DNA of 64,000 nucleotides from Octopus sinensis. Taxonomy: Eukaryota. Shown here in pieces: positions 7,262 to 59,679 of the stretch; the stretch's first letter is position 1, and each line of letters begins with the position of its first letter. A program made the position numbers and the translations under genes. The notes beneath the pieces are model-generated. The model did not search any database, was not told where the DNA came from, and worked only from the letters and a program-made list of their open reading frames with translations. The stretch covers positions 18,662,001 to 18,726,000 of the forward strand of contig NC_043001.1 of assembly GCF_006345805.1 (NCBI RefSeq). The letters are read 5' to 3'.

Positions 7262-7782
7262 TAGAAAAATGTGTAACTAGTACTTAATTTATCGACCCCG
7301 AAAGAATGAAAGGCAAAGTCGACCTCGGCAGAATTTGAACTCAGAACGTAGCAGCAGACGAAATACCTATGTCTTTACCACCCACAAGGGGCTAAACACA
7401 ATAGGGACGAACAAGGACAGACAAAGGGATTAAGTCGATTACATCGACCCCAGTGCGTAACTGGTACTTAATTTATCGACCTCGAAAGGATGAAAGGCAA
7501 AGTCGACCTCGGCGGAATTTGAACTCAGAACGTAACGGCTGACGAAATACCTATTTCTTTATTACCCACAAGGGGCTAAACATAGAGGAGACAAACATGG
7601 ACAGACATAGGTATTACGTCGATTATATCGACCCCAGTGCGTAACTGGTACTTAATTTATCGACCCCGAAAGGATGAAAGGCAAAGTCGACCTCGGCGGA
7701 ATTTGAACTCACAACGAAACGGCAGCCGAAATACCGCTAAGCATTTCGCCCGGTGTGCTAACGTTTCTGCTGGCTCGCCACC
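7262..7782 (-). mobile_element. SINE family D tandem array (head plus 3 units, 184-bp period)
   Basis: Junctions at 7367/7368 and 7551/7552 (aaaga[a/c]ata|ggtatttcgtc on the element strand); the last unit has a different end. Confidence 0.85.
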
Positions 7783-8223
7783 TTACAGCTCGCCTATCAT
7801 ACCTTCTACATTCGTCTTGTCTTCCCTTTTACTTTACACTAATTCCCGCTCTCATTCCTTTCATCTACACTTTCCTCACGCACCATCTCAGACACCCACT
7901 TAAGTATATAGAAAGATATATGTGTGTTGTGTGCGCGCGCAACTGAAATAACAAAGAAAAAGGCAAAAATGTAATATATCTCTCTGAAGCTGAAACACTC
8001 AGAAAGCTTTCGCACAGAGATTTATTGCTTTTTCCCCCCGCTTTCTCTTGTGTGTGTGTCTCTTAGCTACATAGAAGACATATTAAGAGCGAGATAGAAA
8101 GGGAGGGCAAGAGAGAGAGAGAGAGAGAAAGAGAGAGAGAGGGGGGTAGAAAAAGAGAGATAAAGCGATTGAGAGAAATAGTAGATTTTAATCCTGTGAC
8201 ATCAGTGTTGTAATAGTTAGTGC

Positions 8224-8602
8224 GGAGGCACAATGACCCTGTGGTTAGGGCAGCGAACTCGCGGTCGTAGGATAACGGTTTCGATTCCCAGCCCGGGTCT
8301 TGTGAGTGTATATTGAGCAAAAACACCTAAAGCTCCACGTGGCTCCGGCAGGGGTTGGTGGTGAACCTTGCTGTACTCTTTCACCACGACATTCTCTCAC
8401 ACTTTCTTCCTGTTTCTATTATACCAGTACTTTAAAGGGACAACCTTGTCACACTCTATGTCACACTGAATCTCTCTGGGAACTACGTTAAGGGTACACG
8501 TGTCTGTGGGGCGCTCAGCCACTTGAACGTTAATTTCACGAGCAGGCTGTTCCGTTGATTGGATCAACTGGAACCCTCGTCGTCGTAACCGGCGGAGTGC
8601 CA
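8224..8602 (+). mobile_element. SINE family A, full length
   Basis: tRNA-like head ggaggcacaatgaccctgtggttagggcagcg...gtttcgattccc; matches other copies over about 375 bp. Confidence 0.85.
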
Positions 8603-8761
8603 CGAATTGTTAAAGTTGGTATAAGCGTTTTGGAATCAGTTATATTGTTGCTGTTGTTAATTTCGAGCTGATTCTGTTGGAGCAGACTTTTAATTAAATA
8701 AACAAATAAAAGCAACCATCCATATTCATACCAATCTTCGTTCAAGTATTGCATACTTGTA

Positions 8762-9063
8762 GTTTGTTCCTTCTCGAGCCATGCTTGACTTATTAGGGCC
8801 AGTCCCCCGGTTTCCTGGGCGTATAGGTTCCCCATCTGGACAGGACACCAGTCCGTCGCAGGTGAGCTGCTAGATGCAGGAGGAAAGAGTGAGAGAAAGT
8901 TGTGGCGAAAGAGTCAGCAGAAGTTCGCCATTACCTTCTGCCGGAGCCCCGTGGAACTTAGGTGTATCGCTCATAAACACAAACATTGCCCGATCTGAGA
9001 TTCGAACCCGCAAACCCTTGACCACGAGTTCACTGCTCTAACCGCTAGGCCATGTGGCTCCAC
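8762..9063 (-). mobile_element. SINE family B
   Basis: A-like head joined to the body ctcacctgcgacggactgg...gctcgagaaggaac; second copy at 52786-53092, fragment at 49361-49555. Confidence 0.8.
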
Positions 9064-10125
9064 ATTGCATACTTAGCACTATGTTATCCAATATGTTGTC
9101 CAAGTAGTAAGTGGTTAATTAAGGGAGATTTGACTGTTACTTCTAGCTCATCAAGATACTAGATAAAGGAAAAGACGAGACGTGAGGTGCGGGACGGGAC
9201 GAGGAAAGAGAGATAAGGAGTGAGGGAGAGATTTCCTCAGTATTTTATACAGCAACGAAATCCAGCATCCCATCTCAAGAACCCACATCCTTCACTCCAC
9301 CCAACACCGGCAATAGACTTCAGGATTACAAAGAAGTTTAATGTATGATTTGTCACGGGAGACATGACATTGTTCTCCATCGAAATCGAACAAATACTTC
9401 ACATGAATATTTGTCCGACATCATTTTCACCTGCTAGTTCAACGAAATCCCCCCCCTTTCCCATCCATTACATTTTTATCGTTTACACTTCTTAAACCCT
9501 CTACTTGTCGTTGTCCTTAATCCTTATTTCATTCCTCCTCAGTCCATAGTTCTACGGCATGTTTAAATCCTTTCACAATATCAATGAGAAATTTAAGTCA
9601 GCTCACGTGATCCATAATTTACATTTCACGCTAAGTAGATTAGTTACGGCTAAACGGTTACAATGTTGGCTCTAAGCTCGACTCAAGTGTCCGTTGCAGG
9701 TGAAATATTAAACTTGAATTTCTTACTCCAATCATTTTCAAAAGCGGTCTGGTAAAATGAGCAGCGAATTGTAAATAAATTTTCTAATCATACATTCCCT
9801 TAGGTATCACAAGTACTTTATTTTAACTATTTATCTACCGAGAGGTAATATATATCCTCACTTAAACGTAGTGTTCTGTTTGAACAAACTATACTGTCTG
9901 TGTGTGTGTCTATCTATCTATCTATCTATCTATCTATCTATCTATCTATCTATCTATCTATCTATCTATCTATCTATCTATCTATCTACCACGTGTGAAT
10001 GACGGAACCAGCTTGAGCATAATCCTGGGAGGGGGGCATCGATTAGATTTATCCCAGTATGCAACTGTTACTTAATTTATCGACCCAGAAAAGATGGAAG
10101 GCAATGTCGACCTCGGCAGAATTGT

Positions 10126-57148: not shown

Positions 57149-57530
57149 CTAGCAGTATCGCCCGGCGTTGCTCGGGTTTGTCAGGGAAATAACTATAAAG
57201 CATTTTTAGAGAGTTATAGCTAAAAAATAGCAAAAAAATGGAAAAAAAATGATGGTAAATTTTTTTAGAGTTAAAAAGGTCGAGTTGCGTCCCCTAGACA
57301 GTCTGTGGTTTGTCTTTCTGATTCTCGACCCCATGTCGAATTTATCGATTTTTTTCAGAACTGGGGGAACTTTTCAAAATTTTCGCTGCGTTAGTTTTGA
57401 ATTATGACATTGGGCTATGTGTGTGTCAAGTTTCATCAGAATCGGTTGAAAGCCGTGGTCAGGGTGAGGGTACAACCTGACAGACACACAGACACACAGA
57501 CAGACAAACTGCCGTTTATATAGAGAGAGA
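57149..57530 (-). mobile_element. Non-autonomous Helitron-like element
   Basis: Minus strand a|TCtctctctatataaacggcag ... cccgagcaacgccgggcgatactgCTAG|t; shares its 3' end with 20096-20488. Confidence 0.85.
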
Positions 57531-57669
57531 TGACATAACACAAGCAAATCTAAAGATACAATCATCGACGATGCAAAAGTGCCTCATGACAATTGTGTAT
57601 GAACTTGATTTTAGTTCGAGTGACTTGTAAGTGAAGTATTTTCAACAGTATAGTCAGTCTTTAGCTATA

Positions 57670-58195
57670 TATTGGGTTGTCCGGAAAGTTCGTACCGATT
57701 TATGGTAGCTTACCTTTCGACTTATTTTAGAAGATAAGATATTTTTTGACTACACCTCCATTTAGAGCACAGTTTATGCTATCTTTTCGTGGAAGAAGGT
57801 TTATGTTCCTAATAACCTGCATTAATTCTGTAACCCTTTATAATAGAAGATAAGAAAGTTCATTTTCGGCACTTGATGCTTTGGGAACCAGGCAAAAATT
57901 GCTGCAGCTCGGCTGGGATGTGTTACCCCACCTTCCATATTCACCAGATATTGCTCCTTCAGATTTCCACTCATTCAGGTCTCTACAGAATAGTCTTAAT
58001 GGTAAAAATTTAAATTCCTTGGATGACGTAAAAAGAGACCTTGATGAATTGTTTGCCATGAAACCACCTCGATTCTGGGAAGAGGGTATTTTCAAGTTAA
58101 AGGATAGATGGAGACGCATTGTGCAACAAAATGGTTCATATTCGGTTAATGAAAAATGTAATGCCAAGTATTTATTGCCCTTTTTCTTTCCCAAT
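57670..58195 (+). mobile_element. Internally deleted mariner element
   Basis: ORF 57881-58201: LGWDVLPHLPYSPDIAPSDFHSFRSLQNSL...FWEEGIFKLKDRWRRIVQQNGSY; 5' TIR-like ttgggttgtccggaaagttc after TA. Confidence 0.85.
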
Positions 58196-59187
58196 ATATA
58201 GATACAATTAGTTCATACCACTACATGACTTCAGGAAGCACAGCATCTCTTATTTCTCCAAAACTAACATTGCTGGGGTCAGATACTGAACCCCAGACTT
58301 TCTGTGCTAGGTGATCACATGATTAACCCCTATATGTTTCACTTGTACACTGAAAACTATCTCTGAAAAATGTATGTCATTCTTATTGTTAAACCTATTA
58401 TATTTTGACCAGTTGGTTACAAAAGGAAGAGGTAGTGCACATGATAATCATGACATTCGGAAAAGCAGTGGTTGGAAAAAGTTTGTTGCTCACACTTTTG
58501 AGCAACGAACGTTTTCCAGCCATCGCCTTTTCGAATGTCCTGAAGAAGGTATCTTTATATAACTACATTCTTTGAGTACACACACACACACACACACACA
58601 CACACACACACACATACACACACACACACACACACACACACACACACACACACAGCTCCACACAAACCTTCTGTACACCATATTTCGTTCCTCGAGCCCA
58701 CATCAGGTAATTTATTTCGAAGTGATTACTATTAACAGCAAATAATAGTGCCCGCTAATTTCTCAACTGTTAAGTTGGTGTCTGGATCCGCCTTCTTTTC
58801 TAATTTCCTTCACGTCCGCACAGGGGTCAATGTAGAAACCTTTACTTAGTTGCTCTACCTGTTAAAACACAAACCATGTCTCCTTCAATTTACATCAAAT
58901 CATTTTAAAAAGAGAGATAAACATATGATAGTGTAGTCCTAGATAGCCAATGTACCTTGAAATTGACGAAGTGAACAAAGCTGAAACACTTCTGATTACT
59001 GACCTGCTTAGTGAGAGTTGATATGAGACAGGCACAAGTAACCATAGCAACAACAATGAAGATTCGAAAAAAAAAAAACAAAAAAAAAACTGATGCTGTC
59101 ACTATAGAAAGCACGAGTGTAGTGATCCATAGCAAAGTACAGCTGAAATATCTGGCACAAAGCACTTGACTCTAAGAGAAGCATACC

Positions 59188-59596
59188 TATTTCTTTACTA
59201 CCCACAAGGGGCTAAACACAGAGAGGACAAACAAGGACAGACAAACGGATTAAGTCGATTATATTGACCCCAGTGCGTAACTGGTACTTAATTTATCGAC
59301 CCCGAAAGGATGAAAGGCAAAGTCGACCTCGGCGGAATTTGAACTCAGAACGTAGCGGCAGACGAAATACCTATTTCTTTACTACCCACAAGGGGCTAAA
59401 CACAGAAGGGACAAACAAAGACAGACACACGGATTAAGTCGATTACATCGACCCCAGTATGTAACTGGTACTTAATTTATCGACCCCGAAAGGCAAAGTC
59501 GACCTCGGCGGAATTTGAACTCAGAACGTAACGGCAGACGTAATACTGCTTCGCATTTCGCCCGGCGTGCTAACGTTTCTGCCAGCTCACCGCCTT
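59188..59596 (-). mobile_element. SINE family D dimer with 15-bp TSD taagagaagcatacc
   Basis: TSD at 59173-59187 and 59597-59611; internal junction at 59371/59372. Confidence 0.9.
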
Positions 59597-59679
59597 TAAG
59601 AGAAGCATACCATTCGATTCATTTGTCAAACCTCCCCCAGCCCAGTAAAACACTATATCCACGAGCACACCCTTGTGTG

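Follow-up and report, generated by a model that had tools for sequence, protein, structure and literature searches.

Family D is a short interspersed element (SINE) that occurs mostly as short tandem arrays in a 64,000-nucleotide stretch of the Octopus sinensis genome (contig NC_043001.1, positions 18,662,001 to 18,726,000 of the forward strand; hereafter the window). The closest described systems are chimeras made by the reverse transcriptase (RT) of long interspersed elements (LINEs), together with tandem SINEs of several kinds. Template switching by LINE RT yields same-orientation chimeras with one target-site duplication (TSD), and in Magnaporthe the switch sites are recurrent, defined by a motif, and located beside hairpins (PMC2104539). 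In the blood clam Scapharca broughtonii, tRNA-derived SINEs with head-truncated inner units form TSD1-(SINE)n-TSD1 arrays (PMC11481361); that paper proposes unequal recombination between TSDs as a possible origin of SINE arrays, the origin of the units and motifs in the flanks being outside its scope. Satellites derived from SINEs in squamates have been proposed as a path from dispersed to tandem repeats (PMC10702118). In rodents, head-to-tail multimers make up 40–49% of B2 and Dip copies, and whether they arise by insertion at a tail or from a dimeric template is openly left unresolved (PMC8466645).

Family D arrays share with the LINE RT chimeras (mammalian U6-L1 type; Magnaporthe WEIRD/Mg-SINE/MGL; PMC2104539, PMC4476161) a common orientation, direct fusion, and one TSD. 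In both, the 5′ partner is complete to the last base of its 3′ end, the 3′ partner lacks its 5′ portion, and three-part elements exist (by double switches in the chimeras); as in Magnaporthe, the joint recurs at the same nucleotide, at a short motif, next to hairpins. Unlike these chimeras, both partners belong to one SINE family, the breakpoint is invariant (8/8), and multimers are the majority form. The D motif also marks genomic targets, whereas the Magnaporthe study found no microhomology at switch sites. The clam arrays likewise come from a mollusc and have a full tRNA head on the first unit, later units head-truncated at one position, and one TSD, but their inner units are also tail-truncated and number 4–15 per array, whereas D units all have a complete tail and number 2–3. 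The squamate satellites resemble D in that part of a SINE is repeated in tandem and the terminal unit is longer, extending to the end of the SINE; they differ in having up to about 1000 homogenized units near telomeres, whereas D arrays are short, dispersed, flanked by TSDs, and not homogenized. Multimers of Alu, B2/B1, and Dip connect full-length units through A-rich tails, whereas inner D units are headless and their joint is an internal site. Our literature searches found no description of cephalopod arrays of this kind. What seems to be new is the combination of four features: the joint is invariant and sits at a defined place in a hairpin, every unit has its full tail, multimers are the majority form, and the same pentamer occurs at target starts.

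Arrays of family D share an invariant joint

All statistics on family D refer to 8 loci and 16 units in this one 64-kb window. The body plan is one 49-nt head, AAGGCGGCGAGCTGGCAGAAACGTTAGCACGCCGGGCGAAATGCTTAGC, followed by one to three 184-nt bodies, which run from GGTATTTCGTCTGCCG to GGGTAGTAAAGAAATA and contain the B-box-like GAGTTCAAATTCC. Tandem Repeats Finder reported 184-bp arrays at 7273–7735, 17180–17605, 36232–36584, and 59183–59546 (90–93% identity, 0–4% indels), and BLAST with one unit as query added arrays at 43703–44049 and 53172–53471. The D loci and one flank are:

7270–7784, minus strand: array A7, with head 7736–7784, unit 1 7552–7735, unit 2 7368–7551, and unit 3 7270–7367 (98 nt, 3′-truncated)
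7785–7803, minus strand: 5′ flank of A7, GGTATGATAGGCGAGCTGT
17147–17605, plus strand: array A17, with head remnant 17147–17174 (internal deletion), unit 1 17175–17359, unit 2 17360–17543, and unit 3 17544–17605 (3′-truncated)
24048–24308, plus strand: monomer M24, element 24066–24290, 5′-truncated by about 10 nt and ending AAAGAAATA plus TA
36203–36596, plus strand: array A36, with a 9-nt head remnant 36203–36211, unit 1 36212–36395 (GGCAT start), and unit 2 36396–36579 (GATAT start)
43698–44111, minus strand: array A43, with head 44051–44099, unit 1 43867–44050, and unit 2 43710–43866 (27-nt internal deletion)
50742–50966, minus strand: D monomer in a same-orientation SINE chain, whose tail leads not into GGTAT but into AGAATT and the next element's truncated head
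53105–53534, minus strand: heterodimer A53, with D head and D unit 53288–53519, the usual joint, then unit 53120–53287
59173–59611, minus strand: array A59, with head and unit 1 59372–59596 (8-nt deletion) and unit 2 59188–59371

When all 16 units were aligned, the tail end AAAGAAATA proved to be fused to GGTATTTCG in the same register at eight joints. The AAAGAAATA/GGTATTTCGTC junctions lie at 7367/7368, 7551/7552, 17359/17360, 17543/17544, 36395/36396 (the variant GATATTCCG), 43866/43867, 53287/53288, and 59371/59372. This confirms an earlier note on this DNA, made from the sequence alone, which had reported eight joints at one nucleotide; each was found where that note had put it. The window contains 13 D-type 3′ ends, 8 of which show this junction with a unit, and six of the eight D loci are multimers (two with at least three units, three homodimers, and one heterodimer). 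Every array has a single head, always at its 5′ end, and inner units lack one; within the window, no headless stand-alone D copy begins at G50.

The three arrays with both ends intact (43698–44111, 53105–53534, and 59173–59611) have one outer TSD and none between units (3/3), and each of the other three (A7, A17, and A36) has one damaged end. The TSD of A43 is GATATTTAT(C/T)AC (44100–44111 and 43698–43709), and that of A53 is TTTT(G/A)GTTAAGTTTA (53520–53534 and 53105–53119). The TSD of A59, GGTATGCTTCTCTTA, is exact at 15/15 positions (59597–59611 and 59173–59187) and has no other match in the window at three or fewer mismatches. M24 lies within an 18-bp TSD, TAACT(C/A)TCTTGATAATAA (24048–24065 and 24291–24308), and its flank lacks GGTAT. 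The earlier note had also described a different tail on the distal units of two arrays. This is true of A53, where the unit at 53120–53287 begins like D but ends in a tail from another SINE family (...GTAGAAAAGAATTCA), but not of A7, where 7270–7367 belongs to a third unit whose similarity stops after about 98 nt; the sequence that follows (7148–7269) is not repeated elsewhere in the window.

The eight D loci are dispersed over both strands, with TSDs of 12–18 bp around four of them. With at most three tandem units and differences of 4–13% between units of one array, they are not the long, homogenized arrays of a SINE-derived satellite. A43, A53, and A59 have the features of template-switch chimeras, namely a common orientation, no internal TSD, and a single outer TSD, and the mosaic subfamilies of A17 and A36 and the foreign tail of A53 point to an origin from different RNAs. 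Judged by its sequence, each array looks like a single insertion assembled from different RNA copies.

Origin and age of the units

The mean distance between units is 0.0925 within arrays and 0.097 between arrays, and of the seven within-array pairs, five are at least as distant as pairs taken at random; the A43 units are each other's nearest relatives, at a distance of 0.039. Linked subfamily markers (TGTCTT versus TGCCGC, and GATTAAATAAG versus GATAAATTAAG) are mixed in A17, where unit 1 is of a different subfamily from units 2 and 3, and in A36, where units 1 and 2 bear different markers. Since distances within and between arrays are about equal and these two arrays mix subtypes, units appear to have been drawn almost at random from a pool. 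No array-private substitution is common to two units of the same array, which rules out late local duplication, well after insertion.

Private substitutions number 26 in the 911 nt of head-proximal units and 22 in the 888 nt of the units that follow, so the earlier expectation that proximal units would be younger is not borne out. Unit 2 of A59, with 1 private change, is the unit nearest the family consensus and the least mutated in the window. No marker divides first from later units, the subtype combination differs among all six arrays, and the number of units ranges from 1 to at least 3; the fixed unit number and position-specific diagnostic differences of a dimeric master are absent. Descent of all dimers from one pre-duplicated master, a possibility raised by the earlier note, is also at odds with the equal distances within and between arrays and the mixed markers of A17 and A36, which support recurrent formation of the joint from different source copies rather than a single dimer clade.

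GGTAT at joints and target flanks

Five D tails are not joined to a D unit. The bases after them are GGTATGC (36580), GGTATGC (59187, within the TSD), GATATTT (43709, within the TSD), TATAAC (24289), and AGAATT (50741). With the frequency of GGTAT in the window (87 sites on both strands) as the null, the 2/5 non-self flanks that begin with GGTAT represent an enrichment, as the earlier note had proposed (P about 5e-6); 3/5 begin with G(G/A)TAT (P about 9e-8, in a small sample). The 15-bp TSD at 59173/59597 and the GGTATGC flank at 36580 that the note had listed are both present, and its three exceptions are confirmed: the 3′ ends at 24288, followed by TA and the 18-bp TSD; at 50738, which we place at 50742, followed by AGAATT and another SINE; and at 43714, which we place at 43710, followed by GATATTTATTAC.

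GGTATGC occurs five times in the window, and three of these occurrences flank D arrays. The 3′ flank of A36 (36580–36596, GGTATGCGCTCCTCTTA) resembles the A59 TSD over 15–17 nt (GGTATGC--TTCTCTTA versus GGTATGCGCTCCTCTTA). We rejected 3′ transduction from the 59-kb to the 36-kb copy, since the linked subfamily markers of their units do not agree. At the 7.7-kb array, the 5′ flank begins GGTATGAT and so with GGTATG. After this GGTATG, the flank (7785–7803) holds a 10-nt partial copy of the start of a SINE head, which may reflect nested insertion into the head of another SINE or a duplication at the 5′ end.

All eight internal units start with GGTAT or GATAT. Both D units that start with GGCAT adjoin a head, and copies of the X family, which have GGCAT, GGAAT, TGCAT, or AGCAT at the unit start, are always preceded by heads. 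Units of the TAT type are joined in 8/13 cases versus 0/8 for the others (Fisher P about 0.006), a comparison confounded by family. The motif link between the joint and the target flanks is real. Specificity for GGTAT alone, however, predicts about 10% self-hits: 9 of the 87 GGTAT sites lie in D loci, yet self joints make up 8/10 of the GGTAT-type joints (P about 5e-7 under GGTAT-only specificity), a shortfall of about 30-fold.

RNA fold and likeness to tRNA

From its sequence, family D is probably a tRNA-derived SINE, with a good box B, a partial box A, and a tRNA fold only at relaxed threshold. Box B, GAGTTCAAATTCC, lies 3′ of the joint, as expected from the earlier placement of the joint between the A and B boxes; the A-box-like motifs 5′ of the joint, which we read from the sequence, fit the box A consensus only partially. 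RNAfold pairs D positions 33–45 with 50–62; the resulting hairpin has 13 bp, a UAGC loop, and an energy of −16 kcal/mol (−18 if the sequence is GGCAU), and the joint, between C49 and G50, is at the 3′ edge of this loop. ARAGORN found no tRNA at default settings. Below its default threshold, it drew a cloverleaf over 21–96, with loop CTTAGCGG and the hairpin as the anticodon arm; as weak evidence, this relaxed fold puts the joint directly 3′ of the anticodon equivalent. Rfam gave no hit at gathering thresholds and only noise at permissive E-values over the A53 head and unit start (53400–53540).

The tail ends in GAAAUA, and these six bases could pair with UAUUUC at unit positions 3–8 (duplex of about −7 kcal/mol). 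Microhomology between tail and target had been suggested to direct the SINE into its own head, but the polarity is wrong for insertion in direct orientation: from the geometry of target-primed reverse transcription (TPRT), GAAAUA would pair with the sense-strand UAUUUC and not with an antisense primer. We rejected a tail end paired with sense-strand UAUUUC as the TPRT primer, since this would yield inverted rather than direct arrays, and found no role for the complementarity in forming direct arrays. With D consensus 52–57 and 228–233 as its arms, the joint is a near-palindrome, GAAATA-GG-TATTTC, and the tail end resembles the 5′ arm of the anticodon-like stem (CGAAAUG). Within the window, the D tail matches only D copies and there is no LINE 3′ end with a D tail; Pfam, applied to candidate LINE fragments, gave one sub-threshold match, to a domain of unknown function.

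Neighboring repeats, a host exon, and searches elsewhere

Three repeat families account for about half of the window, whose sequence is AT-rich and has a high density of microsatellites. The other features are:

49739–51139, minus strand: SINE chain of the D/X superfamily, at least 8 related SINEs abutting in one orientation
40152–40513, minus strand: old, diverged dimer of a related family with a different tail, joint ..GGAAAAAATA to TTCGGTTTTACG at 40298–40319, about 3 nt from the D position
About 21 loci, e.g., 35518–35930, 5314–5703, and 22458–22842: family P, a tRNA-like SINE of roughly 400 bp with the 5′ end GGCGCAGGAGTGGCTG.. and an internal microsatellite
About 16 loci, e.g., 61233–61625, 55406–55790, and 46465–46845: family Q, a repeat of about 385 bp
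56025–56735, minus strand: NCX exon open reading frame (ORF), first membrane domain of a sodium/calcium exchanger (PF01699, precomputed for its database hits)

In the chain, each X-type tail (..ATTATTAAC or ..GATTATTAGC) is followed by an 8-mer, T(A/T)(G/T)C(G/A)GAA. Beyond the 8-mer comes in 3 cases a full-length 5′ end and in 2 cases the internal site TTCCGCCGAGG, with the same joint both times (at about 51122 and 50530). The chain could have been produced by repeated use of a single target or by a series of template jumps. The chain adjoins a CCA/GCC-rich complex tandem repeat (51559–51987) with periods of 3, 24, 51, 75, and 99 and long low-complexity ORFs on both strands. Since the joint of the dimer at 40152–40513 is close to the D position, joints near the anticodon-like loop arose more than once. 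Family P also forms same-orientation tandem pairs (15741–16545, 28182–29490, and 52046–52613); its copy at 28855–29490 has TAAACGACAGA on both sides and is thus an ordinary insertion beside the tail of another copy. Fragments of family Q lie near three D arrays (6990–7141, 36717–36865, and 52895–53095).

The NCX exon is the sole clear host exon in the window, with a best database identity of 82–83% (an ENA contig; the cuttlefish Acanthosepion pharaonis). The ENA contig matched through this exon (L001) contains no D copy. A search with the peptide that spans the joint returned one protein, on a 543-bp ENA metagenome contig (L013, sample SAMN16869657). On this contig (1–543), the tail of a D-like monomer (..AACGAAATA) runs directly into the core of another same-orientation SINE, at an internal site, and the flank does not begin with GGTAT; a family P copy adjoins the monomer. 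The D tail scanned across metagenome contigs gave 11 chance hits and no D copy, and a conserved 21-mer had no match in bacterial and archaeal genomes and viral contigs. Two ORFs of the window, looked up by exact sequence, had no database entry.

Discussion

Because the anatomy of the D arrays matches that of LINE RT template-switch products, we propose that template switching gave rise to them. Our favored explanation, to which we would assign about an even chance, is that each array was concatenated in one event by RT switching between D transcripts, guided by GGUAU microhomology. The steps at the level of RNA and cDNA, which we infer, would be as follows. During a single TPRT event, the RT would start at the tail of a D transcript and copy as far as G50, the base that directly follows the anticodon-like hairpin loop on the 3′ side, and then resume at the tail of another D transcript, with the last template read through to the head. 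The joint would be fixed by the cDNA itself, which past GGUAU ends in ...ATACC-3′ and could pair with a GGUAU just 3′ of the tail of the acceptor RNA. Acceptors that bear GGUAU might be read-through transcripts of copies at GGTAT targets or transcripts of existing multimers. If the template were multimeric, the switch would be an in-register, homology-guided copy choice and the joint would be inherited; since one switch would then suffice, the A53 heterodimer would also be explained. The same pairing of a primer end with RNA just downstream of the tail would bias genomic targets to N/GGTAT and therefore could generate the flank motif without a highly specific endonuclease. One head and one outer TSD per array, units of mixed origin and equal age, the joint that A53 shares with the rest, the T at unit position 3 that tracks the joint, and the position of the joint at the edge of a hairpin all argue for a single event.

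It is also possible, although we offer it tentatively and think it more probably wrong than right, that a more general rule is at work, in which any DNA 3′ end ...ATACC is passed to a D transcript tail that GGUAU directly follows. One substitution in the anticodon-like stem, C to T (GGCAT to GGTAT), would then have made the nascent cDNA of the element resemble a cleaved target, and both self-concatenation in each round and steering to GGTAT would follow.

Several points weigh against concatenation in one event. The evidence comes from only 8 loci and 16 units, and a two-step insertion with homologous second-strand priming would yield an identical product; the tests that bear on the two-step route either give weak results (P about 0.02) or presuppose a certain specificity. 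An invariant breakpoint (8/8 joints) is unusual for template switching, and putative acceptor RNAs with GGUAU after the tail are required. Three D monomers (24288, 50742, and that on L013) have no GGTAT flank, so the rule is not obligatory. The 7-kb and 17-kb arrays are 3′-truncated; 3′ truncation is not a product of TPRT, and later deletions must be assumed. If the chain at 49.7–51.1 kb arose by repeated use of one target, as it may have, target-driven tandem formation would be more likely a priori. The fixed breakpoint could also have another cause, an RT block at the equivalent of position 37, as tRNA modifications such as m1G37 are established RT stops, but such a block leaves the contrast between GGTAT and GGCAT and the absence of headless arrays unexplained.

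The model of the earlier note, insertion of the SINE into a resident copy of itself, is disfavored by our results, and we regard it as rather unlikely. An endonuclease of the partner LINE, or primer annealing, would prefer N/GGTAT; new D copies would integrate at G50 of resident copies, and the homologous top strand would prime the second strand in register, leaving a clean tandem with only the TSD of the resident. Because such in-register priming is possible, the missing inner TSD does not refute this route, and much else is in keeping with it: non-self flanks begin with GGTAT-type sequence more often than by chance, GGTATGC..TYCTCTTA is common to the A36 flank and the A59 TSD, the 5′ flank of A7 starts with GGTATG, the units are of mixed origin, and A53 is accounted for if the resident carried the other tail. 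Nested same-orientation insertion does occur, since the D copy at 50742–50966, and possibly A7, lie in the heads of other SINEs, and the chain at 49.7–51.1 kb may itself be serial re-use of one target. As context, LINE clades with target-specific members (Dong-R4 and L1-Tx1) have been reported as the active ones in an octopus (PMC13282606). However, the would-be target copies are too different and the self-hits exceed what GGTAT specificity alone predicts. The first 12–15 nt of neighboring units, which would be TSD copies, differ at 10/88 positions versus 4.7 expected (P about 0.02, with low power; the count leaves out the CpG base and has one misaligned insertion corrected by hand, and the expectation comes from the private-mutation rate). 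Unit starts differ within A36 (GGCATTTCATCT versus GATATTCCGTCT; GGCAT versus GATAT) and within A53 (GGCAT versus GGTAT). Proximal units are not younger (26 versus 22 private changes, again with low power), and in A59 it is the distal unit that is least mutated. Self joints are 8/10 although only 9/87 GGTAT sites lie in D loci, the proven GGTATGC targets beside A59 and A36 were never re-used, and an internal GATATAAT site present in many D bodies was never used. Finally, non-self sites have A/T-rich sequence upstream of the nick, but the self site next to a head has AGC there. None of these results, at eight loci, is decisive.

Faithful copying of multimeric master genes, by analogy with Alu, which is a dimer, would need the joint to arise only once, with no switching at insertion. 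It would account for the identity of the joint in 8/8 cases and for one head and one TSD per array, and Pol III could read through the units, as the D consensus lacks a T4 run and A43 and A59 have none at all. We nevertheless consider it improbable, since the six arrays have six subtype combinations without diagnostic differences between units 1 and 2, unit number ranges from 1 to at least 3, A53 has a foreign tail, and the older-family dimer with its joint about 3 nt away (40298–40319) indicates that similar joints arose more than once. Tandem duplication at the DNA level after insertion, by replication slippage or unequal exchange between the internal GGTAT and that of the 3′ flank or between arrays, is less probable still. 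The three arrays with an intact D-type 3′ flank do resemble the internal site there (GGTATGC twice, GATATTT once), which the two window monomers do not, and the A43 units are mutually closest (0.039). But no array-private mutation is common to two units, within- and between-array distances are equal, 5/7 pairs are already no closer than random, A17 and A36 combine different subfamilies, and a 5-nt microhomology is a poor substrate for recurrent exchange. Least credible, in our judgment, is rolling-circle reverse transcription of a circular 184-nt RNA from G50 to the tail end, made for example by tRNA-type cleavage in the anticodon loop and ligation. Unit boundaries do fall exactly at the anticodon-loop position and the 3′ end, and units 2 and 3 of A17 are identical across their first 40 nt; however, one circle would give identical units, and the subfamily markers of most neighboring units are not the same, which rules out rolling-circle copying of a single template. 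An extra switch to a linear, head-bearing RNA would still be needed. Even taken together, DNA-level duplication and rolling circles are very improbable. We also rejected deletion between direct GAAAT repeats of a full head-to-tail dimer, which predicts a ...GAAAT/GCTTAGC joint that is not observed.

On how SINE multimers originate and how dispersed repeats seed satellites, family D gives an unusually clean handle: an invariant joint in a tRNA-like hairpin, a one-base difference (GGTAT versus GGCAT) that tracks with joining, and the same pentamer at genomic targets. If the GGTAT link fails genome-wide, D arrays would be another case of the template-switch chimeras already known. If, on the other hand, the primer-end rule is true, it would be a sequence-encoded, self-reinforcing path from a dispersed SINE to a tandem repeat.

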